Source: Chlorokybus atmophyticus (lineage: Eukaryota; Plantae; Mesostigma and Chlorokybus algae). From it: a stretch of 64,000 bases of DNA. A model generated the notes under the pieces. The model was not told the origin of the DNA. It searched no databases and worked only from the letters and a program-made list of their open reading frames with translations. Shown here piece after piece: positions 9,804 through 24,576 of the stretch (position 1 is its first letter; each line of letters opens with the position of its first letter). Both the position numbers and the translations under genes were made by a program. The DNA lies in assembly GCA_009103225.1 (NCBI GenBank), contig RHPI01003330.1:318472-382471 (forward strand), written 5' to 3'.

Positions 9804-11164
9804 ATGGCTGACAGCAAAAGGTAACAATGAACAGTGGCTGCTTGGGTCTGTGTGAGAACCTGTTAGCAAGAAAGAGTGGCAAGCAATGCAAAGAGTTTGC
9901 TTTTTGGTTGAAAGAGCCATGTGTGGCAGGTTTAGCGGTAAGGTCTTTCTGGTCACGGGTGCGAGTTCTGGCATCAGCGCGTGCGTGGCGGAGCACCTGG
10001 CCGCAGACGGCGCGCACGTCTGGCTCGCCGCCCGACGCGAGGAGCGCCTGTCGGCACTGCGTGACAAGATTGTTGCTGCGGGCGGAAGCGGCAAGTCCTG
10101 ATGGCACATTTGGCGGTCCTATGAACTTTGTAGATGTTGTCTGCGTGTGCACGTGCATGCGCGCATGTGCGTGTGCGTGTGTACACCCGCGCACCAGCGT
10201 GTGTGTCTCACTTGCAACAGTTGCCGATTGCAATGCACGCACACATGGACATGTAACAATATGCTTTTTTGCTGCAGCTACTGTGCACAAGCTGGACATA
10301 CGGGATCACGCGGCCGTGGACGAATGCGTTGCGGCCATAGTTAAGAAGCATGGCAAGCTTGATGGTGCTTGGAACGGCGCAAACATTGGCGGCAAGAGTG
10401 GCACGTTGGAAGCGTACGATATGGCGAACTTTGCGGTGCGAAGAACTCGTGCTTAACAATCTCCTACGCAATATTCTACTCCAAGCTGATCAACTTTTGT
10501 TCATTGCTCTCTGCACTACGCAGGATATCCATGCCACAAATGTCATTGGAACAGCAGCTTGCATCAAGGCAGAAATGAAGCAGATGCGCGCTCAGGTCAG
10601 CACAAAACATCTTTCTTTTTCACACACAACTCGCTCAACTTTGACCTTACTCTAGTATACACTGTGTGCACAGGGTTATGGGACCATAGTCAACAACTCC
10701 TCAGTGGCCTCCACGAAGGCAATGCCGCACATGTCGGCATTTGTATCATCAAAACACGCGCTGGAGGGCCTCATGAAGTGCGCTGCGCTGGAAATAGCCG
10801 CCGCGGGTGTTCGCATAAACAACATCGACGCTGGCTACGTGTACCCAAGGTGTGAGAGTCAGATTACTTGTTCAAACCCTTGCTTGGCATGCTGCTTGCT
10901 GAACAGCATGCAACACACAACCACCTTCTCTGCAGTGAGATGTTCACCAACTTTGTGGACAAGCTACCGAAGATGGGTTTGACGGAGGAGTGGTTTTTGG
11001 AGAAGCTACCGCAGCGGCGTTTCACCACGCCGGACGAGGTGGCGAATGCGGCGCTGTTCCTGCTGGATGATCGCCTCGCCAGCGGCGTCACGGGACAGAG
11101 CATCAGCGTCTGCGGCGGGATGGGACTGAACCAGTTTTCGGGCACAAGTTCGCTGAAGCGATGA
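9804..11164 (+). CDS. Classical short-chain dehydrogenase/reductase (NADPH-type) with Tyr-to-Phe at the catalytic motif
   Basis: Model MADSK|RFSGKVFLVTGASSGIS...WLAARR; KHGKLDGAWNGAN; GTIVNNSS; SAFVSSKHALEG; GVRINNIDAG; PDEVANAALFLL..GVTGQSISVCGG. The second intron (10091-10277) is GC-AG. Confidence 0.9.
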
Positions 11165-12049
11165 TGGGTGAGAAGTTGTCACGTTGGCGGTGTGTCACTC
11201 TGGGCGGTATTGCTGCCATAGAGTGCAAACATGTGTATACATTTGTGTCACAGTGCAGTGCAGCGATTTGTGTACCTCGTGTCTTAGTACTCTACAGTAC
11301 CAGGGATTGCAAATTGAGTGCTGGAACGACGACCACCGCTGGGCTGTTTGAGTTGGGGCAGTTAAGTGTCGTGCAAATTCTCTTGAGCTATAATTTTCTA
11401 GCGGTATAGGGAAAAATAGGAGGGGCCTGGAACACAAGCAGACCTGCACAGTACAACCAACAACAGGCAAGCATGCTCGATACACCACAACACACATGCA
11501 CGTAAACTGCTCCAACTACCTAGCTTAACTAGGCTAGGGGGCCTGGTCCCTATGTGCTTCTGTGCGTGCATGGCAGGATAGATGCAGATCATCGTCTCGG
11601 CATTGCTCAGCGTATGGAGAAGAAACTAGGAGCGGCGGTGCGCAAGATGCGGTGCAGAAGATGACGACTGTGCGGACAATCAACGTGACAGCCCTAACCC
11701 TAACTGTTCTCTTCCAGCAAGAATCTTTCTCAAATGGTGTCAGGTGTGTCAAGCAGTGAGCATGTCCGACTTGATAGAACCGAACCTTGCTGTAAGTAGG
11801 CAGACTCTTTATAGCAAAGCACGGCACAGCAATCTAATATTACTTCAGAATCTATACACTTCAGTGGCAACTAAGCGTTACGGGTACACAGACAAAGTCC
11901 ACAGCGGTATGCGCATTGCCAGCCAGCAATGTTTTCCCTCCCCTAGTACACCCTTGTCTATACTGTACACGATAGCTAGAGCACAGAAACGCGCACAGAG
12001 CACACACACACACACAACCCCTCTAACCCACCTCCCACTACACTCACAC

Positions 12050-14434
12050 TTACATGACCCTACACCCCGAGCTTTTCTTCTTCCCACTGCCGATCCTTTC
12101 ATTGTACTGCTTCACGATGGCATTCAACCCTTCCGCCGACGACCCCGATCTCCCTCTACTCCCTTTACCAGAACTCCCTTCCTCAGAGAAAGATCCCGTG
12201 CACGAGCCCGTGAAGGAGTTGCCTCTGGTCAGCGCTGTACGCAGCTTCGATCCGCCTGAGGACGCGGGCATCAGGCGTTTTGATGTGCGGGAAGAGGGGA
12301 GGTCCACGGACTCGAGGCGACGGATGATGTCCTGGAAGGAAGGACGGGAGGAGGGGTCGTCACACCAACAGTCTTGGATGACCCTGTTGTTGGGAGACAG
12401 AGGTGAGGTTAGTGCAGTTGAAGTCGGTCAATCTGAACAGATTCCGCTTTGGGTGTGTAGCAGCTGAAGCTGAGATACACCGTATGGCAAGTCTTTCGAT
12501 GTGATAGTTCTCAAGTCCTAGCATGCATGTGGTTGTGAATATCTGCGCTTTTGGCATTAGGAAGCAGGCCCAGTTGAGTAGAATATATGCCTGCATGCAG
12601 ACCAGTGTAACTACACGCAGCAGGATTTGCGTGCACGTACTCTGCAACGCCTGCTGGGTACAAAGCGCGCGTGCAGTAAGGCAACTGCTGCACAAAAAGG
12701 GAGTCTGCATCCGAGGCAGCCGTCTTTGTGCTGTGCGTCTTTGCACCCTCAAACATCTGGATCACAATAAGCGCTCAGTAACCACACACGCTTCCAGACA
12801 CAGAACACAGGGTATGCATCACAAAGGTTGAATTGTCAACACCTCAAAGAGAACCATGCCAAAAGCATAGACATCTACTTTCAGGTCGTACGGTCTCTCA
12901 CTCAGAATCTCAGGTGCCAAAAACCGGTCTGGACACAAGGCAACAACAACTAGTTAGTAGCACTACGTGATACAACACTATCCGATGGCAACAGTGTTCA
13001 GATGCATGAGCTGAATAGAGAGACCAGAAAAGAAAATGTTGAAAGGCCAGGTTACGCACATGCGCCCTCATGCAAGGCCAGGTTCACCCGCTCCACGATT
13101 CGGGTGCCTGGCCGCTGAAACCTCGCGTGACCAAAATCACCAATCTTCGCTGCACCCGCGGAGTTCACGAGTATGTTTCTGCAGGGAAGACTCATCGTCA
13201 TAAGCAACAATTCCCCATGTGCTGTCAGACAAACTTGAAACCGACTTGTTGCTTACGCTGGGTTCAGTGCACCGATGATGATGCCCTCCGGTTTGCGCAA
13301 GTGCAGGTAGTTCAGAGCCCTGTTGAGGATCCAATTAGTAACTTGCATGCCACCCACACATGTGCGCGTGCACGCAAGTACACACGCACATGTGTACAAG
13401 CATGCATGCAGGCTTTGACACTGGCACACCCGCACACACTGACACCCGCACACATGCGCATGCGCGCCCGCACGCACATGTGTACAAGCATGCAGGCTTC
13501 AACACTGGTGTCATAGCTCTCTTTGCCGGCATGCAAGAAGGAAGCGCTGATGATGTGACAAGTAAGCAAGCGCTATTGCTTACTTTGCAAGGCTGAGTGC
13601 GTATGCCACAGCCAGTGGCCCAGGCAACCTTCCGCCCTCCGCCGCCATACGGTCATACAATGTGTCCTGAGAGGAAAGGGAAGCACTTGTCAACATCATG
13701 TTTCGTCATAGTGGCAGCGAACAACCAGCAAGCCCACCTGCTGCATGTACTCGCGGAGGATCATAAACGGCGGGTGCTTGGTGACCGCGCCGAGGAACTG
13801 CACAATGTGCGGGTGCTGCACCTTCATGAACACCTTCACCTCAACTCTGAACGCTCGCCTGCATGAAGTCACAGGGACAGTCAAGACAACATGCAAGCGC
13901 CACCAGTACTTGATTTGCAGCACTGCTCTGCTCAGTGCTCACAGCTGTTGAGGAGAGAGAGTCTCGGGTAGTCGCTTCACCACTGCAGGTGCGCCAAAAT
14001 AGTTCAGCTTTAGCAGTTCCGCCCCTGTGACTGGATCCTGCGAGAAAGAGAGGGTTCAGACACTCCACACGCTCTCGATGGAGGCAGAGGTTGAGGGTGA
14101 ACATAAGACCAACATGCGACAGGTTGTGTCCCCCTGATCTCCTCACTCCATGGTGGAGTGTGAGGAGATTGGGCTTGACGGGATGGATTGATGAGAGACC
14201 AAGGCTTAGTCACTCCATTCATCCCATCAATCCACACATACACCCCACCTCCTCCCCCGCAACATCTACGCGACATGTTGGCATCCAGACCCGCACCTTC
14301 CGTATGACTTGTGCGTCCCTGAGGTCCAGGTCGGATGGGTCCACCTCCCAGCGCTCGTCCGTGTCGGTGTCATGTGGGAACAGCCCGGTGCTGGTGCTCT
14401 CCTCCTCTTCGTAGGCTTCTGGTCTCACCACCAC
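12050..14434 (-). CDS. TKL/Raf-like kinase-fold protein, probable pseudokinase, C-terminal CaaX; N-terminal exons (up to about 15.7 kb) not resolved
   Basis: Spliced exons: RWEVDPSDLDL; PAVVKRL; EVKVFMKVQHPHIVQFLGAVTKHPPFMILREYM; ALNYLH..IIIGALNPA-NILV..KIGDFG; FLAPEIL..YDLKVDVYAFGMVLFE; IQDCWCDDPSSRPSFQDIIRRLE; ends KKKSSGCRVM*. Confidence 0.85.
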
Positions 14435-17400
14435 CTGAGGAGACACACCGAATGCTTGATCTCTTGCATGACAATGCACACACAGGAGAGAGAGAGAGAG
14501 AGAGAGGCGGGGGGTGCGGAACGAACCAGAAGTGTTGGCGGGGGTGGATATGGCAGCTGCGGGCTGGTAGTTGTGTAGTTGTACAAAAGGGGTGTGCTAC
14601 TATGCCGGCATGCATCGTGTGCTGTGACATGCAAGCGACATGCATTACATTCATGGGTGAACACATTCTATTCACCACCGGGCTAGTACTTTCAATGCTA
14701 TGCCAACTCTAGCCTGCCCCGTTAGCCATGCAGTCAGCATGCAGAATTGTATTCACCTGCACCACGGCTGCAGTTAGCGGCCAGCCTCCACAACAGTGAC
14801 GACGACAGCAGCAGACTGTAGGACTCCCCCCGCCCTCCTCTCCCATGTCGCCGCCCTCCTCTCCGCCCGTCATAGTACAGCGCTGCCGATTGCGCAACCA
14901 GGGTTGGGTTCCCCGCAGCATGCATGCATGACATCAGCACGCATGCACGTCGCTTTTGCAGCGGTGGTAGTCTGCGTCGTGTGTAGTCCTCGTAGTTGAC
15001 ACGGGCAGACTTCACTGCTCCCCATGTACTTGCACGTATGGATTTGCCTAGCGTCGTGTGGTCTTCGCTGTCTGTCATCTTCAGCACTGCCCTGCATGAC
15101 CAAACAGGGCGGGCACCAACCATTAACTAGGCTGCCTACGCATGCAAGGTGCTCCCGGTCAAGCACCCCTACCACTATGACAATTACACACTCCNGGGGG
15201 GGGGGGGCACAAACACACACAAGTACATACCGGATACACCTTGTCGGTGTCCAGGCCGTGTGGACTGCCCATGGTGCTGAGGCCTGACGTCGGATCCATA
15301 TGCCATGCGAAGAGCTGCGACGGAGCTGCCTGTTGATGGCCAGCGCTGGACCAAACTGCAGCTGGCATGCCAACTACACCAACTTAAGGTTGCTACCTGC
15401 CAGGTGAGGGGGAAAATGGTTACATGCTTGCCATCACTGCTGCGGACATGCAAGCTAGCATCCTGGCATGCAAGGTGGCTGCATGCCAAGATCACACATA
15501 GCAGATTACATTCACACTCACCGCAGCGCCGCACTGGCCACGACCAGTCAGGCCGACAGCTGGCAAGAAGCCCAATCCTGATGCTTGCGAGTAATTGCGA
15601 GTAATTCTTGACGAACGCCCTCTCACAGTTGCACAACCCCACCAGCGCAGCCTTGCTTGTCTTATCCCAAGCACGACAGCAATGACGGCGACGCCGCTGC
15701 CTTCCGGAGCAATATTGACTAGCAGGCGGCAACAAGTCTAATGCGTTCCTCTGCGCGCATGTGCGCGTTTGTGCATGTCTCGCGTCCCAGCGACGGGAAA
15801 TAACGGCACGCTGGCCACCGACGGTTCGTCGCCGCCGTTATCGGCCGCTTTGCGACTGGCGAGAGGCACTTGAACGAACGGCGATGCTGTACCACAGCGC
15901 CGTTCCGTCGGGGCAAGTGGGCCGCGCCGTTGTTCAAAAAAGGGAGATTGAGAGGAGGGGTTGTCTCATGCGAGGCCGAAGGGACTTCCCGGCGATTTGG
16001 GACGACATGGCACGGTGGAGCTCGCTGCTGGTACGGAGAGCTGTTGCGGTTCTCAGCGATTGGAGCTTCGAGGTTCGGGAGTTTGAGTTGCTGCGATGAA
16101 AGCCCCTCCTCAAGCCTCTCCGCAACGAGGGGCGGGGGGTGGGGAGGGGGGCTGTTAGTAACATGCCACTCAACGGCATACCATCAAGGTATGCTTGCAA
16201 TCAAGGTATTCACTGCCTAAAGGCAAACCTGATCACGAGGCTGATTTGGAATAGGGCTGCAGTTCATAATACGAACTTACACTACATTGAATATATGTTA
16301 CTAGCATACACACGCATATAGCATACCCACACATTATGCACTTTTTAAATGTGCAATATAAAGCATGATACGTTGCTTTGTTGTACACAGCTAGCCAATG
16401 AGTGATATAAACGTGGATATAGTCAACGGTACAAATATACATAACAACAATTCATAAAACATGCCAACTGAATATATTACGTTCATCATAATGTCGTGTG
16501 TCACGATATATGGTGTCAATGTGTAATTTACACGACGCTGTGCCGTATTCTCATTATGTTTATTAACAAGTTTAAAGAATTTTAAGTGAGGTGTATCATG
16601 AAGCTGGTATGATGATAATACATTCAGTCTCAAAAGCATGAATTCTTTTACAGTGTAAATATGTTCATGCTATTCGTGATAACACTATGCCGTGTTCTTG
16701 TTATATTATTATAAATGACGGCATATATCAGGAACAACAGTGAGGATATAGTGCGAAGCTGATTGAATGATAATATAATTATTATCAAAAAGCAACATAC
16801 GAATGGGTTGTGTATGTATATATGTTCATATAATTATATAAACATCATATCAACGTTGTAATTACATGTATTGAAGCGCGACATGCTCAGGGCCCGCTTG
16901 CCACTCATATTAATCAATATCATGAAATGCGATGTTCTTGTTGATATGGCAAATTGTTTGATGGAGCTGAGCATGTTGTGAAGGGCATAATCATATCCAC
17001 ACATATACGCACTTCAGCATGCAAGTCCCATGTCAATGCTATTGAAGCTTGATGAAGGGTGCAGTCAAGTTGCCATTTGCGACCGGAGATGCTATGTGGA
17101 TGTTCCTATTAATGTTCACTACAACATCATTACTTAGTAACAACATTCAGCAACAACACGTGCGCCAACACTGCAGCCTTACCAAGGCTCTGGCGCCGTT
17201 TGTTCAGTGCCGATGTGTAAGGTCCAATCTACACTGCAAGAGTATCAAAGTTCATTATCCAACATATTGCTTGTACATATGTGCAAGCAACATGTTTGAG
17301 GACCGAGTTTAAACGCAGCGGAACGGGACAGCTAGCAGCAGGTAGCTTTTAATATACCACAGCTATTGTCAGTTGCAAGTTGCTGAGGCTTGCAAACTCT

Positions 17401-18033
17401 TTGTAAGAATTGCACCAATTATCGATGTATAAACAAGCTGGTTTTGGCTGATAGAATTGATCAGCAAGTTACCTAAGTTGCAATAAAACAGTAATAAATA
17501 CAATACAATTATTAGCCTTGTGCTAAGCTGCCTACACAATCAAAAAGTTGTAGTGCCATGCGTCTCTTGAACAACTATATGCGTGGCAAAAAAGGCAACC
17601 TGCCATTTTCAAGAAGGTGGGCCCACTCGGGCCACGCGCACAGTTATACATTTGTATCACCATATACGTATGCCATAATATATGTAAACATACATATATG
17701 TATGGGGCTATGTTAAGACCGTCTCAAAGTTCATGTCTTGAAGTTAAACTTTTACCAAATCTTAAATAGAGAAAAGTTGACATTTATCTTATATTGTACA
17801 TCAATAAATGCAAAATTGCAACGTTGTTAACTATTGCTATAAACAAGAGTAGTTACAAACATTGTTTAGCGCTCAAGTGCTACATGATGGTGGAAATGTT
17901 ATTGAACAATTGTACTGAAGCAAACTAGAGACAACGCAATGTTGTTGTAACAAACAAGTTGTTTTATGGTAATAAACAACGTGGCCGTATAGTTTGTTGT
18001 TTACAAAATACTATCTGCACATCATGTGTAGAC

Positions 18034-18074
18034 AGTACACTTCGAAGACAAAACTTTGGTCTTCGAAGTGTACT
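18034..18074. repeat. Perfect 16-bp inverted repeat hairpin in an AT-rich intergenic island
   Basis: agtacacttcgaagac (18034-18049) / gtcttcgaagtgtact (18059-18074), 9-nt spacer. Confidence 0.9.
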
Positions 18075-19390
18075 TATATGTCCTCAACTGGCTCAGCCAG
18101 CTGGGGACATTTGAGGTTGCACATGAGGGCTATTGCAAGAGTAAAGGTTGGGACTTGCAAAACGGTAAGGTGAAAACTCTGACACTGATATGTAGATTAT
18201 AATTCCGATATCCATAAATACTAATGCCATGCGTATCTTGCCGCCCCGCGTATTTTCCCTTGTAAAACTGCCTACAAACAATGCATGCTGCAGGGACAAT
18301 TATCTGTGCACTATCTGTTCGATTCTTTGTCTTCATGCGTACAAATCGCACACATTATCGAACCACTACCGTATATGAAGTCATCACATACCTTTGCTCT
18401 TTTGTGCAAAATAACACCTTTCAACAAGAATACAGTCACTCGTAATTATGCTTGCAATGCACATTGCGTAAGGCATATATAATGTCATAAAGGGATATGC
18501 TGGTGTTCGGGAACGCAACTCATAACTGAAAGAGCAAACAGAAGCAAAACATGCAAACAATGTTTTATTTACAAACATGCTTGCACATATATGATTGCTA
18601 TGCCACACCATGCATGTGTACAATATGATAGTGCATGCAAGATGTATAACAGATTATAGAGCTGCGCGGAGCACGCTCTGAAATTGGTGTGCACCTAGTG
18701 CTATCATACTTCCCACATGTTAGCAAGCATTGCAATTAACACAGTAGCAACAGGCACAGCAGCACCGAGTTAAGCAGGGGTTAAGACAAAGCTTTACAAC
18801 AACAATAACCCCTTGCCCAAAACATGACCTATTATTGGATTGGAGGCAGCATGCAGGGATAAGCGGGTAAGGCAGCAAGGAACAACCTACAGAGCGCAGG
18901 CGATACATGTCTTGAAAACTGTTGCACAACACTATGCTAAAACTATTTGCTGCATTACTATTGTTTGTTTCAACAAGGGCTTAGCGCAGCACTCTGCGTG
19001 CCATTGCACGAAAAACCCAACACATGAGCGCAAGTGACATATTGATGTTGGAATTGGTTGGTTACACACAAGCGTTGACAGTGCGAACTAATGCACAGCT
19101 CTACTGAGAGGTGATGATTGCTGTATGCTTGACTAATGGGGTGTCGGTGGTAAGGTTCGAATATTAGTTAGTGAGGTAGCCAACTTGAGCCCTGTGGTCT
19201 ATGCTATAATAGTGTGTTGATTGCTGATGGTTGGTGCATGCTGATGTTGGTGGCGATCATAGCGTAGACTAAGCATGCGCATTTATCCTGCGCATTGACT
19301 GTACACAGCACAGCAAGGACAGTCTGTGCAGACCACAACGTTCACACCACCAGCACATCATCCATGCAGGCCAAGCCAACAACGCTGCGC

Positions 19391-22300
19391 TTATTTCTTC
19401 ACTGGTTCGTCCAGGTCAATGTAGTCTGGGTTTTTCCTCAGAATGACAAACCCTTCCAACACAGGCGTCAAAGGCTTGTACTTGTCGGTCGTCAGCTCTG
19501 CACGCTCTCCTGCACCGAGCAGCACGGGCGTTGTGTGCGTCTGGAAGCCGGACACAGTCTTCGGCCTGCCGGCTTGGCCAACAACATCAACCGCCTGTCC
19601 AACACGCACGGACACTGGCAAGGGCTTCAAGTCTTCGTCCAGTGTCATCAGCATGCGCGGCTGCAGAAGTCAAAGTCAGCCAATAAATGAGGCCAAACCA
19701 CAGCGCAGTGTGCATCAATACCAGCGGCATGCGGCATCAACACTGACCTGCATAGCAGTCGTCAAGAAGTACAAGATGTAGTGGTATTTCCCCAGGATGG
19801 TGGTCTTCATGTCAAAGCACGCGTGCAGTACCACCAGCAGGCCGGCAAGCGCTGTTGGCGAGAGCAGCGAGCGGTCATGATGGTACGGATTCAAAGTCAG
19901 TAGGCCCTTGCCCAAGTGAACTAGTCCTTGAGCCAGTCGTACAAGGAAGAGCATGTTGGCGTCCTTGTAGTAGTAACTGGAGAGGTTCCTCAGAATGCCT
20001 GCTACCCTGGCATTATTGGTCCCTGCGCATACGAGCCCCAAGCCCAGGATGGCTGCCTGGCTGACTTCGCTGTCACTGTCGTGACTTAGCCGGCTCAAAG
20101 TGTCCATAATGGACAGCTGCAAGGCAATACGAAGAGTTAGAGCTGCAAGCATGACCATGTGGCAACTATAAACTAACAGTCTTAGAGCACAAGCCTCGGG
20201 ACAGTTGCTAAATGAGACCAAGAATATAACAGGACGCGACCGAACCTGTGGATTTGATATGGACAGGAGTGCAAGCCCAAGGGGCACTGCCTTGCGAATG
20301 CTGGGGTCACCATACTGTAGCAAATGCTCCAAGCTGCGCACGGCCATGGCCTGACCCAACTCTTCTGCCATACCAACAATCGCGATGCCTAGCAACGCAG
20401 GAGCCTGGGAACAAAACGCATGAGTGAGTGAGTGCCGTTGCAGGTACATCGATGACAAGAGCCGTGAGAGAGCGTGGGAACAACACACATAATGCGCACA
20501 GGCAAGCCAGCACACCTGATGACTGCTGTCCCCCTCCAAGTGATCACCGCATATTCCCAGCAGCTTCTGCACCTTCAACACGTTCCCTGAGTTGGCATAC
20601 GCGCAGGTTTCTAGCACGATCTGGCAGTGCTTGGAGATGCAGTCGTGAAGGGTCTTCGCAACTTCCACTGTGGCGTCCGCAGCATCCTGCTTGCCAAGGA
20701 ACAGCAATCCCAACCCCAAGCACAGCAGCTTGGCAAAGGGATCCTGCAGCTCGGTTTCGCTTCGTTCCATCAGGGCCTGCACTACCGACTGCGCGGCTTC
20801 CTGGTGGCATGTTCCGGAGAACACAAGTCCCATGGCAACAGCAGCGAACGCGGCAACATCCATTGTGACCTTTGAATCAGTCACAACAGGACTCAGCAAC
20901 TCAAACACCTGAGACACGAAGTGGGTTGCATGTCAGTTAGCAAGTTTGTCCAAAGCTGCTTGCAATAAAACAAAGAGATAATTGCCACGGGACACACCTC
21001 TTCCTTCTGCGTTCCGGCGTACGCAAGACCCAAGCCCATAATGGCGCCGATGCGGATGCTAGGACTTTCTTTATTTACAGAGTCATACAGCAAGGCGTAA
21101 GCAGGATCACACTCGTTGCGAACGCCGCAGTTGACAACACCTACAGCTAACAGAGCACCCGCGACCACGTGTTGGTCGTTGCTGTACAAGTATTTATCAA
21201 TCTGGGGAAGCCCTCCCTCAACATCCCACATCGCGATGGAGCCCTGGGAGAGACAAACCGTCACAACATGGCCGCAACCAAGCAATGCATGTATGTTACA
21301 CAAATTTATACCAAGCTGGCTGCTGCGCTGATCTTCCCATGCTCTTTGTTCTTGAACAGCCAGCTGCCACTGGCACCGCCCTCCGCGGTTGTGGTCATCA
21401 GCTTGTCTGTGCCAAAGCCAGCGTTGACAAAGGCATTGACAAACGTCGCAGCAAGGTTCTGCCTGGCTGAGTCCACTGTAGGGGCGGCGCTGCGCGAGTC
21501 AATCAAGTGCGTCTGCAGTATGCGACTGTGTTAGCTCTAGAGTTATGCGACACAATGACAAACAAAGAAAGGTCAAAGCGGGACCTTGTAAATGTCCTCA
21601 GGAGTCTTAGGCTCCATTACATCCAAGTCACGGGCCAGCGTCAGATACCCTTCACTTAGCCTGTTGTTGCGCAGAATGTCCATAAGTGTTTCGCGGTCAT
21701 CAGGGGAACAGAGCGTGTCATCTTCTTCCAGGTCCAGCAACACACCCTGCACAACATAGACTGTTAGCTGTGGAAGCAAGCTTGGATCGTGGAGCAGCCG
21801 CAGAAGTATGCCCTGGCATCACCTGCGACGCCAAAATGTAGGCTAGTTGTTTCTTCTCGGAACTGTCCGAGCAAGCCTTGAACGTCTCAACCATTGCCTC
21901 CACGTTGTTCATACGCAGGGCAACACCCATTGCGTCTGTATACTTTTTGACTTGCATGAAGATGTCATATGTAGCCTTGTAAACCATCTTGTCATCAGGA
22001 TCCGGCACGTAGCTGCAATGAAACCGAGGTTAAATGCGGCTTGTTGTAATTGTTGACTTGTTCCATGACAGGAGCAGCAGGCTTGTACCTAGCGCAGCCA
22101 AGCAAGTACAAGCAGGTTCTCTTGTAGTTGGTCTCATCCATATGTTCAAGCAGCAGCGGCACGCTCTCGACCTGCACACAAAACAATCAGCAATCCGGAT
22201 GCACCTTCGACGAGAACGCATTCATTGCCTGAACACAAATGCAAATCCACCTCTAACAGCAAGTCCACAGCCTCTGGCTCTGCGTTGTGCTGCAGACACA

Positions 22301-24576
22301 ACAAGGGTCATAAGAGAATATCTCCACCTTAGCAGATCTACTGTTCCATACAAAGATGTGGTGACAACAGACAGGCAATTGGTTACCAATTTACCTTGAA
22401 ATGGAAGGGGACAATTTGCCGAACCAAAGCCATCAGGTCATCAACGGACTGGCCTTCTGCCTGTTGCAGTATTCAGCTCAGAATACGAGAATAAACTGAA
22501 GTTGTCACATGTGATAGCAAGCTCACACGCACAGCCTCGACATTGCCGTTCATTCATACCTGACGCCTCCCGTACTCTTGTCCGATCTCTCCCGCAATAT
22601 TCCTGACAGATCATGTCGATATCAGCTAGAAGCCCTGAATGTATGCATATACCCTCCCCCCNNNNNNNNNNNNNNNNNNNNNNNNNNNNNNNNNNNNNNN
22701 NNNNNNNNNNNNNNNNNNNNNNNNNNNNNNNNNNNNNNNNNNNNNNNNNNNNNNNNNNNNNNNNNNNNNNNNNNNNNNNNNNNNNNNNNNNNNNNNNNNN
22801 NNNNNNNNNNNNNNNNNNNNNNNNNNNNNNNNNNNNNNNNNNNNNNNNNNNNNNNNNNNNNNNNNNNNNNNNNNNNNNNNNNNNNNNACCACCACCACCA
22901 CCACCGCCAGGGCACATCCCTTGGCAGCGACAACTCACAGCTTCCACCATATGTTGTACAGCTCAACCCAACATGCTCTACAGCAAGTACAGCATGCTGC
23001 ATGTATACCAGTCACAGCACTGCTACCAGTGTGGTCAGGCTAAGAGTGACAGACTGAGAAGTAGCCAAGTCACCTGACATATTCGTGTCCCCATGACACC
23101 ATGTCACCTTCTGAGCCTTGCAACCTGAACTTCAAACTCTCCTGCAAGCAGATGGTAGTAAATACCTCTGCGGACCCTGCGCCTGCTACCTGGCATCTGC
23201 CAAGCCTTACCAATGAAGAGTCATCTGCCATGGTCATCGCCAAAACAGACAAGACGTCCGCTAGGAAAACCTGCCAGCAGTCAACTCGTTTAGAATAAAT
23301 AATTGCTGATACGACGTGCACACAAGCATTGCGTGTCACACAACATGCCTTGTTATTTCCTGGTGGCATTCCCTCGTAGAAGGTTTTGAGTGTGCTGTAG
23401 TGAGGACGCAGAAACTTCAGCGGCTTGGGCACAGATGTCATGGAGCTGGTTGCAGTACGAATCTCTTGTCTACACAGAGCAAGGGATAATGTCAACTGGA
23501 AGCCTTGCATTTCACATGAACACAGCGGAAACAAGGCAGCTGCCACAAAACCTGATGCCTTCCAGCGCCACTTTTTGGACTCCAGCGTCTGCGTCTTGTA
23601 CCCTTTCCACCATGAGGTCAAGTGCGGTTTTCAACTGCAAGTCCTCCTCTGACTGTGACACAATGACAAGCTTAAGTATCCGCATTGCATATGTATGCAT
23701 CTGGGTGCATGTGACAAAACCACCACTGTCTCAACCACTGACCCAAAGCACAGCGCATCAAGCGCAAACTTGTTGTGGTGTGACAGTCAGCCACACAGTG
23801 TGCAAACACATCACAGCACATCTCTGCATGACTTGCTGACTCAAACTCTCCGCTGAGCACCCGATAACTCACGTCATCTGTAGACGTGCATAGATGCAGT
23901 GTCATGTGCACATTCAACAATTTCAATTACGCCACATGGCCTGCAACGACATACAGACTTTAAAGAAGGTGACTGAGGAAAGGGTTCTCCTATATGCATG
24001 TGCATGTACAAGAATAACGGACAAGACTACGCCACGCCAACGTGCCACCAATAACTACACTAATATGTGCTATGACCAGGAACCTTCACAAACCAAAGCT
24101 TTGATTGTGCGCAGCAACATGCGCGTAGCAGCAAACTTCAATCAGTTAGGTTTCAGTTTTGGTGAGCAAACATAAACACTGGTTGTCACACTTACGGGGA
24201 TGAAGCATACAGCCGATAGACGACACAAGTACAGCACTGAGAGCTGAAGCCTGCTTGCAAAAGCAATTAGGCAGTTGTTTCCACCTCTGATTATGAACGT
24301 GCATGTTGCCCAATTGCAGCAGCAAAGCTGTGTGATTACTGTTGTGTCATCCATGGGAGATCAATCACAGCACATGTAGGACACACCACGCACCAGTGAC
24401 CTACTACGAGAGGTTACAATACTCACCAGCTCCTCCTCCTTCTTCTCCTTCTTTCCCCCTTTCTTAGCAACAGCGCCTTCCGCAGGCTGCTGCTTGTCCC
24501 CATCCTGCTTGCTCGGGCCATCCACGTCCATATGCTCCGCAGAGCCGTTGGCGGCTGGCTTGTCGTCCGCAGCCAT
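19391..24576 (-). CDS. RPN1: 26S proteasome regulatory subunit Rpn1 (PSMD2)
   Basis: [125 protein letters not shown]. An N gap lies inside an intron. One GC-AG intron at 23271-23348. Confidence 0.97.
22662..22887. other. Assembly gap (N run) inside an RPN1 intron
   Basis: N run preceded by a C-run and followed by (ACC)n. Confidence 0.99.

Follow-up and report, generated by a model that had tools for sequence, protein, structure and literature searches.

The question raised by this locus is whether a gene that combines a kinase fold, an altered catalytic loop and a Ras-like prenylation tail is a working gene, and what its product might do. The gene is read from the minus strand of a 64,000-nucleotide (nt) stretch of the genome of the alga Chlorokybus atmophyticus (contig RHPI01003330.1, positions 318,472 to 382,471), which is referred to here as the window and to which all coordinates belong. 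An initial annotation, made from the letters of the window, had described it as a probable pseudokinase with a polybasic CaaX tail. The explanation that best accounts for the results is that the locus probably encodes an expressed, selectively maintained, farnesylated and membrane-attached regulatory pseudokinase of the plant ILK/VIK family (Raf-like MAPKKK subgroup C1).

Transcript contigs from two public runs of one 2021 study, X1 and X2, were placed on positions 11800-15300 of the window. When the exons were joined as in the transcripts, ten coding exons gave 430 codons in one open frame, from the ATG at 15368 to the TAA at 12052-12050. The X1 contig (3478 nt) had 0 differences from the window and skipped nine introns, and 9/9 of these had GT..AG ends on the minus strand once ambiguous cuts had been shifted. 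In a search of the public runs, X1 contained 32% of the words sampled from 11800-15300, approximately the share taken up by the exons. Three-frame translation of 11900-15100 yielded kinase-like pieces interrupted by stops, four of which matched PF07714/PF00069 in the correct order along the profile. The exon structure proposed by the initial annotation was confirmed by the spliced X1 contig, with a correction to its span (12050-14434): the stop end was right, but the span began at the acceptor of exon 2 and therefore missed the first coding exon (15231-15368) together with intron 1. Two candidate boundaries were ruled out by the transcript joints; these were an exon 1 at approximately 14755-14872 (MTGGEEGG...), the true upstream exon being 15231-15368, and a last exon starting at 12427, for which the true acceptor is 12383.

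The catalytic loop reads IIIGALNPAN and spans the junction 13257/13178, which is present in the transcript. Residues I207-G208-A209-L210-N211-P212, at 13276-13259, replace H-R-D-L-K-P; the codon of A213 is split by intron 6 and N214 follows at 13177-13175. The HRD Asp has become Ala209 and the catalytic-loop Lys has become Asn. The same coordinates and fitting splice phases had been claimed for IGALNPAN at the outset. No HRD-like motif was found in any frame of 11800-16200 and therefore no alternative exon could restore HRD; the splice variant that had been set beforehand as refuting, one with HRD regained, was thus not found, the transcript itself joining IGALN. The alignment placed DPVTGAE at the position of the Gly-rich loop, versus GAFGEI in relatives. 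The motifs characteristic of the kinase fold are intact. Retained residues were K113 (in AVVKR), E130, N214, D227-F-G and A257-P-E, of which the beta3 Lys, the alphaC Glu, the loop Asn and the DFG Asp are predicted to be the nucleotide- and metal-holding set. Loss of the Gly-rich loop and retention of the beta3 Lys, alphaC Glu and DFG, as originally described, were all seen in the spliced model.

A pseudokinase is defined at the sequence level by a missing VAIK Lys, HRD Asp or DFG Asp (PMC9403797). By that definition the protein is a pseudokinase, with the HRD Asp absent and both K113 and D227 present, and the earlier use of the term holds at that level, the Asp being Ala209. Searches of the PDB with the 20-amino acid (aa) catalytic-loop exon alone returned nothing kinase-like, while other single exons gave generic tyrosine-kinase/TKL matches only (ABL1, CTR1, Eph receptors); a search of the ESM Atlas with the last exon gave generic kinase-tail clusters only.

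The family to which the protein belongs was determined from sequence comparisons and a tree. With exon 4 (40 aa) as the query, 1.84 billion cluster representatives were searched; the best identity was 69%, with no self-match, and the protein and its close orthologues therefore appear to be absent from the cluster library. The whole 430-aa protein was compared locally, by BLAST, with the proteins already retrieved, and trimmed exon peptides were aligned to three backbone proteins, a procedure that placed all exons but exon 3. The best full-length match in the local BLAST was the 389-aa Mesostigma viride protein Mv06929 (P0078), at 38% identity across a 280-aa stretch. A word search starting from P0078 recovered plant proteins annotated as ILK1, VIK or STY46, nearly all of which carry ankyrin Pfam domains. 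Identity to many family members was 36-40% over approximately 280 aa, including the Chlorokybus ankyrin-kinase P0152 (39%).

A maximum-likelihood tree of 30 rows, two of them outgroup kinases, placed the protein inside the ILK/VIK ingroup with 99/97 support versus the outgroup, and in a starred group (96/100) with both Mesostigma members and those of Chlorokybus, Picocystis and Tetraselmis. Its end branch measured 3.72 versus a median of 0.29, about 13 times as long, and its exact position inside the family is therefore unsure; the data do not reject the Mesostigma protein without ankyrin repeats as its sister (p-AU 0.24, approximately unbiased test). The kinase domain begins after only 74 residues. 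Ankyrin repeats are absent: no ankyrin Pfam domain was found in exons 1-2, and exon 1 had no Pfam domain at all. The repeats are absent also from Mesostigma P0078 and Chara P0153, of 389 aa each. Judged from these sequences, the gene belongs to the plant ILK/VIK (Raf-like C1) family as a fast-evolving member that lacks ankyrin repeats. The statement in the initial annotation that the combination was not recognised from characterised plant Raf-like families did not survive this placement, which BLAST and the tree both gave.

Evidence on selection came from the X2 contig, a diverged relative with approximately 90% nucleotide identity in the exons and the same splice pattern. Its listed differences changed 20 codons synonymously and 7 non-synonymously, the seven being mostly conservative. 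Over 293 visible nt there were 23 synonymous versus 8 non-synonymous differences, which gave a synonymous rate (dS) of 0.42, a non-synonymous rate (dN) of 0.037 and a dN/dS of 0.09 (Fisher p = 8e-10). A ratio of this size indicates that the kinase-like domain has been under strong constraint since the X1 and X2 lineages split. The contig of X2 reaches only to 12640, short of the last exon, and its visible letters leave out the 62-nt exon 6. Cryptic Chlorokybus species were described from transcriptomes in 2021 (PMC8611356). If the window stems from Chlorokybus, an origin that agrees with the place of the protein in the tree beside Chlorokybus and Mesostigma sequences and with the date and common source of the runs, P0152 would be the canonical paralogue, taken from a reference Chlorokybus proteome, and X2 would represent a sister species.

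Two further features of X2 were observed. At the start of exon 2 (14391-14434) X2 has 36 diverged letters versus 42 in the window, so that it reads approximately MVRPEVVEEEE versus VVVRPEAYEEEE, an in-frame length difference of two codons in the acidic linker. Intron 5 is CA-rich at 13340-13510 and contains a direct repeat of approximately 45 nt (…cgcacatgtgtacaagcatgca(tgca)ggcttygacactgg…); within this intron, a contig of low depth from X2 carries an extra CA at 13462, and the run therefore includes some unspliced or genomic reads.

Expression, intact splicing and a dN/dS of approximately 0.09 argue for a working gene. They bear directly on the possibility that the locus is a decaying copy or a gene-model artefact, in which the odd loop would stem from faulty splicing or faulty assembly. 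Such an origin could draw on the absence of the protein from the large library and on its very long branch. It is already contradicted by a transcript that equals the window over ten exons, its introns canonical and its frame of 430 codons intact, by the splice pattern shared with the X2 relative, by the low dN/dS and by the lack of any HRD-like sequence at the locus, and we consider it extremely improbable.

To place the altered loop in its family context, 120 relatives from the word search with P0078, out of more than 5,000 ILK/VIK proteins in the library, were surveyed, together with Picocystis and Tetraselmis members found by cluster look-up. The pattern H-x-D-[LVIM]-[KTRN]-P-x-N was matched by 120/120 relatives, with the window's protein as the sole exception. 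A C-x-x-X ending was present in 11/120 relatives. The endings were CTVQ in Mesostigma, GCGCAIS in Chlorokybus, RCQCTIM in Chara, GCNCTVL in Spirogloea, GKKRSDKCTIM in the moss Ceratodon, and CSIM, CTIM, CNIL and CAII in other assemblies; the chlorophytes Picocystis and Tetraselmis ended in CCVIS and CCVVQ, respectively. The proteins behind this pattern are P0078, P0152-P0157, P0161, P0162, P0172, P0244, P0272 and P0283. Nearly all of the CaaX-tailed relatives have a second membrane signal, either an upstream Cys or a Lys/Arg cluster. No CaaX box was found in the sampled seed-plant, liverwort, Closterium, Mesotaenium and Klebsormidium members, and three changes of CaaX state suffice on the tree. 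Literature searches on CaaX boxes or prenylation among ILK/VIK-type kinases brought up no relevant paper.

The Pfam matches on several exons and the recurring CaaX box show that the resemblance is not a product of chance. Because the CaaX box recurs across the family and HxD occurs in 120/120 relatives, the tail appears to have been inherited and the dead loop to be specific to this lineage. On the sampled sequences, then, the CaaX tail is best regarded as an old trait inherited from the family ancestor, and the loss of catalytic residues as derived. Of the two traits, IGA and CaaX, whose joint conservation the initial annotation had proposed to look for in green algae, the CaaX box recurs among the family relatives surveyed and IGA occurs in none of the 120.

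The same survey bears on whether the protein might be an atypical active kinase that phosphorylates its substrates despite IGALN, perhaps with Mn2+, the CaaX box merely positioning the enzyme on a membrane. In favour of activity, the protein retains the beta3 Lys, the alphaC Glu, the loop Asn, DFG and APE, and purifying selection over the kinase domain is strong. There is also a precedent within the family, since Arabidopsis ILK1 has been reported to be active with altered motifs (PMC9403797; PMC5376563); reviews also report that it prefers Mn2+ and that exchange of its HRD Asp for Asn (D319N) leaves it active and even raises its activity (PMC9403797). Against this, H, R, D and K have all changed together and the Gly-rich loop is degenerate as well. 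The presence of HxD in every relative surveyed makes the canonical loop the family norm, and an end branch approximately 13 times the median suggests release from catalytic constraint followed by new constraint. On balance, continued catalysis seems unlikely, although it is the main alternative.

The protein ends in GKKKSSGCRVM*, as the initial annotation had read it, and this ending is present in the spliced model. In the last 80 residues, 37/80 are Ser, Gly or Thr, and there are 15 Lys or Arg versus 4 Asp or Glu; the net charge over the last 20 residues is +5, with three Lys at -10 to -8. Arabidopsis farnesyltransferase is unselective at a1, excludes a charged a2 and accepts Met as a good X (PMC3017772). 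CRVM (a1 Arg, a2 Val, X Met) satisfies the rules for this enzyme, having the Cys at -4, an uncharged a2 and an allowed X (Gln/Met/Ser/Cys/Ala). The likeness to K-Ras4B that had been drawn at the outset was therefore upheld for the box, which fits the farnesyltransferase rules; the Lys cluster, with only three residues, is much weaker than that of K-Ras4B.

A box that fits the rules could still go unused; CRVM would then be an ancestral leftover or a poor substrate at the end of a soluble pseudokinase. Seed-plant, liverwort and zygnematophyte members function without the box, and the X2 contig stops before the tail. Against an unused box stand the fit of CRVM to both the a2 and the X rules of the plant enzyme, its position at the extreme C-terminus despite long and fast divergence elsewhere, and the adjacent basic stretch, which resembles the second signal of nearly all CaaX-tailed relatives. 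A soluble product is accordingly thought improbable.

If the farnesylated, membrane-attached pseudokinase is the correct explanation, Cys427 would be farnesylated, -RVM would be trimmed and the new C-terminus would then be methylated. Together, the attached lipid and the basic tail would keep the protein on a membrane, where it may play a role without normal phosphotransfer, possibly while binding adenosine triphosphate (ATP), as a scaffold or allosteric partner. The most plausible partners would be the catalytically intact, CaaX-tailed ILK-type kinases carried by relatives of the alga.

Several points weigh against this explanation. Prenylation, membrane location, ATP binding and inactivity were all read from the sequence. 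Because ILK1 is reported to gain activity as an Asn mutant, loss of the Asp says less about inactivity in this family than it does in most kinases. The dN/dS obtained with X2 covers neither IGALN nor the CaaX box. A cluster of three Lys alone may direct the protein to endomembranes instead of the plasma membrane, and the partnership with an active CaaX-tailed paralogue is speculation. Finally, we infer the start codon from an in-frame stop at 15384-15386, upstream of the ATG (15368-15366), the transcripts having been placed only to 15300.

A broader proposal can be offered tentatively, and we regard it as possible but rather doubtful. Prenylation would have been the ancestral membrane anchor of the whole ILK/VIK family, from chlorophytes to mosses, and would have been lost towards the seed plants; in addition, the gene described here would be a lineage-specific dead-kinase offshoot whose product lies on the membrane next to an active prenylated paralogue and regulates it, in the manner of KSR with RAF.

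The features of the gene are listed below with the evidence for each.

Coordinates of the features of the pseudokinase-like gene in the window
Feature	Coordinates	Strand	Evidence
Coding exon 1 (M1-P46, 46 aa)	15231-15368	-	Joint 14434/15231 in X1, diverged form in X2
Intron 1, 796 nt, GT..AG, single N near 15190	14435-15230	-	Transcript gap
Exon 2 (V47-K92), acidic linker and start of kinase domain (ERWEVDPSDLDL)	14297-14434	-	Transcript; alignment with WEIDPxEL in relatives
Exon 3, degenerate Gly-rich loop DPVTGAE and beta3 Lys K113 (13977-13975) in AVVKR	13943-14037	-	Transcript, alignment
Exon 4 (40 aa), alphaC helix with E130 (13842-13840), then beta4-beta5 (HPHIVQFLGAVTK)	13738-13858	-	PF07714, E = 1.6e-07
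Exon 5, alphaD-alphaE region	13584-13666	-	Transcript, alignment
Exon 6, alphaE and catalytic loop	13257-13319	-	Both flanking joints present in X1 and X2
Exon 7, N214 (13177-13175), D227-F-G229 (13138-13130), activation segment	13060-13178	-	Pfam
Exon 8, APE (12917-12909) and subdomain IX (VDVYAFG)	12843-12928	-	Pfam, E = 4e-07
Exon 9, subdomain X	12641-12756	-	Transcript, alignment
Coding part of exon 10 with subdomain XI (DPSSRPSF) and, after it, the 80-aa basic Ser/Gly-rich tail	12053-12383	-	Transcript
K421-K423	12082-12074	-	Exon 10
CaaX box C427-R-V-M430	12064-12053	-	Exon 10
Stop codon TAA	12050-12052	-	Sequence
3' untranslated region, at least to 11800	11800-12049	-	X1 record unbroken over 11800-12382

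Beyond position 11800 the X1 contig extends for a further 1.7 kb or so, representing either a very long 3' untranslated region or a merger with the transcript of the convergent downstream gene. At the other end, the presumed 5' untranslated region (15369-15556, minus strand) contains eight upstream ATGs, several of which start short open reading frames; these ATGs suggest translational control or a further, unseen intron.

The upstream neighbour on the same strand (19394-23926, minus) is a multi-exon gene for the 26S proteasome subunit RPN1 (PF18051 RPN1_C, E = 1e-31; PC repeats), with a run of N at approximately 22630-22930 inside it. Downstream, at 9856-11161, the plus strand carries a gene for a short-chain dehydrogenase/reductase (PF00106, PF13561), convergent with the kinase-like gene. 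The approximately 3 kb between the 3' end of the RPN1 gene and the 5' end of the kinase-like gene (16000-19200) has 34-45% G+C versus approximately 55% around it; an Rfam scan of this region gave no match and a tandem-repeat scan gave no notable repeat.

Green algae have been said to encode only non-pseudokinase ILKs, and motif degeneration has been placed in the angiosperms (PMC9403797; PMC5376563). The present gene is a counter-example to that rule, reached by a different route in which HRDLK is lost and DFG is kept. The survey suggests that CaaX boxes with a second signal are common in ILK/VIK kinases of chlorophytes, streptophyte algae and mosses, a feature on which no paper was found, and an inherited CaaX box offers a simple explanation for the membrane access of the family before seed plants. 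No major paradigm is altered; both pseudokinases and kinases with a prenyl anchor are already familiar.

Among known systems, the plant ILK/VIK kinases (annotated ILK1, VIK, STY46 or TKL-Pl-5) have the closest kinase domain and the tree places the protein among them. The family is membrane-associated in Arabidopsis (PMC9403797), and the Gly-rich loop of angiosperm ILK1-3 is likewise incomplete (PMC5376563). The protein differs in having no ankyrin repeats, 36-40% identity and a very long branch, and in its CaaX tail, which the sampled seed-plant members do not have. Its HRDLK has become IGALN with DFG kept, whereas the angiosperm pseudokinase ILKs have GFG and mostly keep the Asp. Mesostigma Mv06929 and the Chara protein share its short N-terminus, kinase domain and CaaX-ending tail. 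The CaaX-tailed kinases of Mesostigma, Chlorokybus, Chara, Spirogloea, mosses, Picocystis and Tetraselmis, for which no characterisation was found in the literature, share the CaaX box and second signal but all keep the HRDLKPxN loop and the GxFG Gly-rich loop.

Animal ILK is similar in being a pseudokinase without the HRD Asp, with a degenerate Gly-rich loop and the beta3 Lys kept. Its loop presumably also reads Ala-Leu-Asn at the matching positions. It binds ATP with micromolar affinity and acts as a scaffold (PMC4718504; PMC9403797), and it has DVK for DFG and Ser for the loop Asn (PMC4718504). N-terminal ankyrin repeats and DVK set it apart from the present protein, which has no repeats and keeps DFG; furthermore, animal ILK has no CaaX box and reaches membranes via integrin, PINCH and parvin. 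The degeneration of plant and animal ILKs is regarded as independent (PMC9403797).

With the anchor of K-Ras4B the protein shares a C-a-a-Met box preceded by Lys in a flexible tail, but it has only three consecutive Lys, an Arg at a1 and a kinase fold as cargo versus a small GTPase. The polybasic stretch of K-Ras4B is a run of six Lys. LKB1 and GRK1/GRK7 are prenylated protein kinases, and KSR and STRAD are pseudokinase partners. The former share with the present protein a kinase fold joined to a CaaX anchor, and the latter fit the idea of a dead kinase that regulates an active relative, but all of them belong to kinase groups unrelated to its own.

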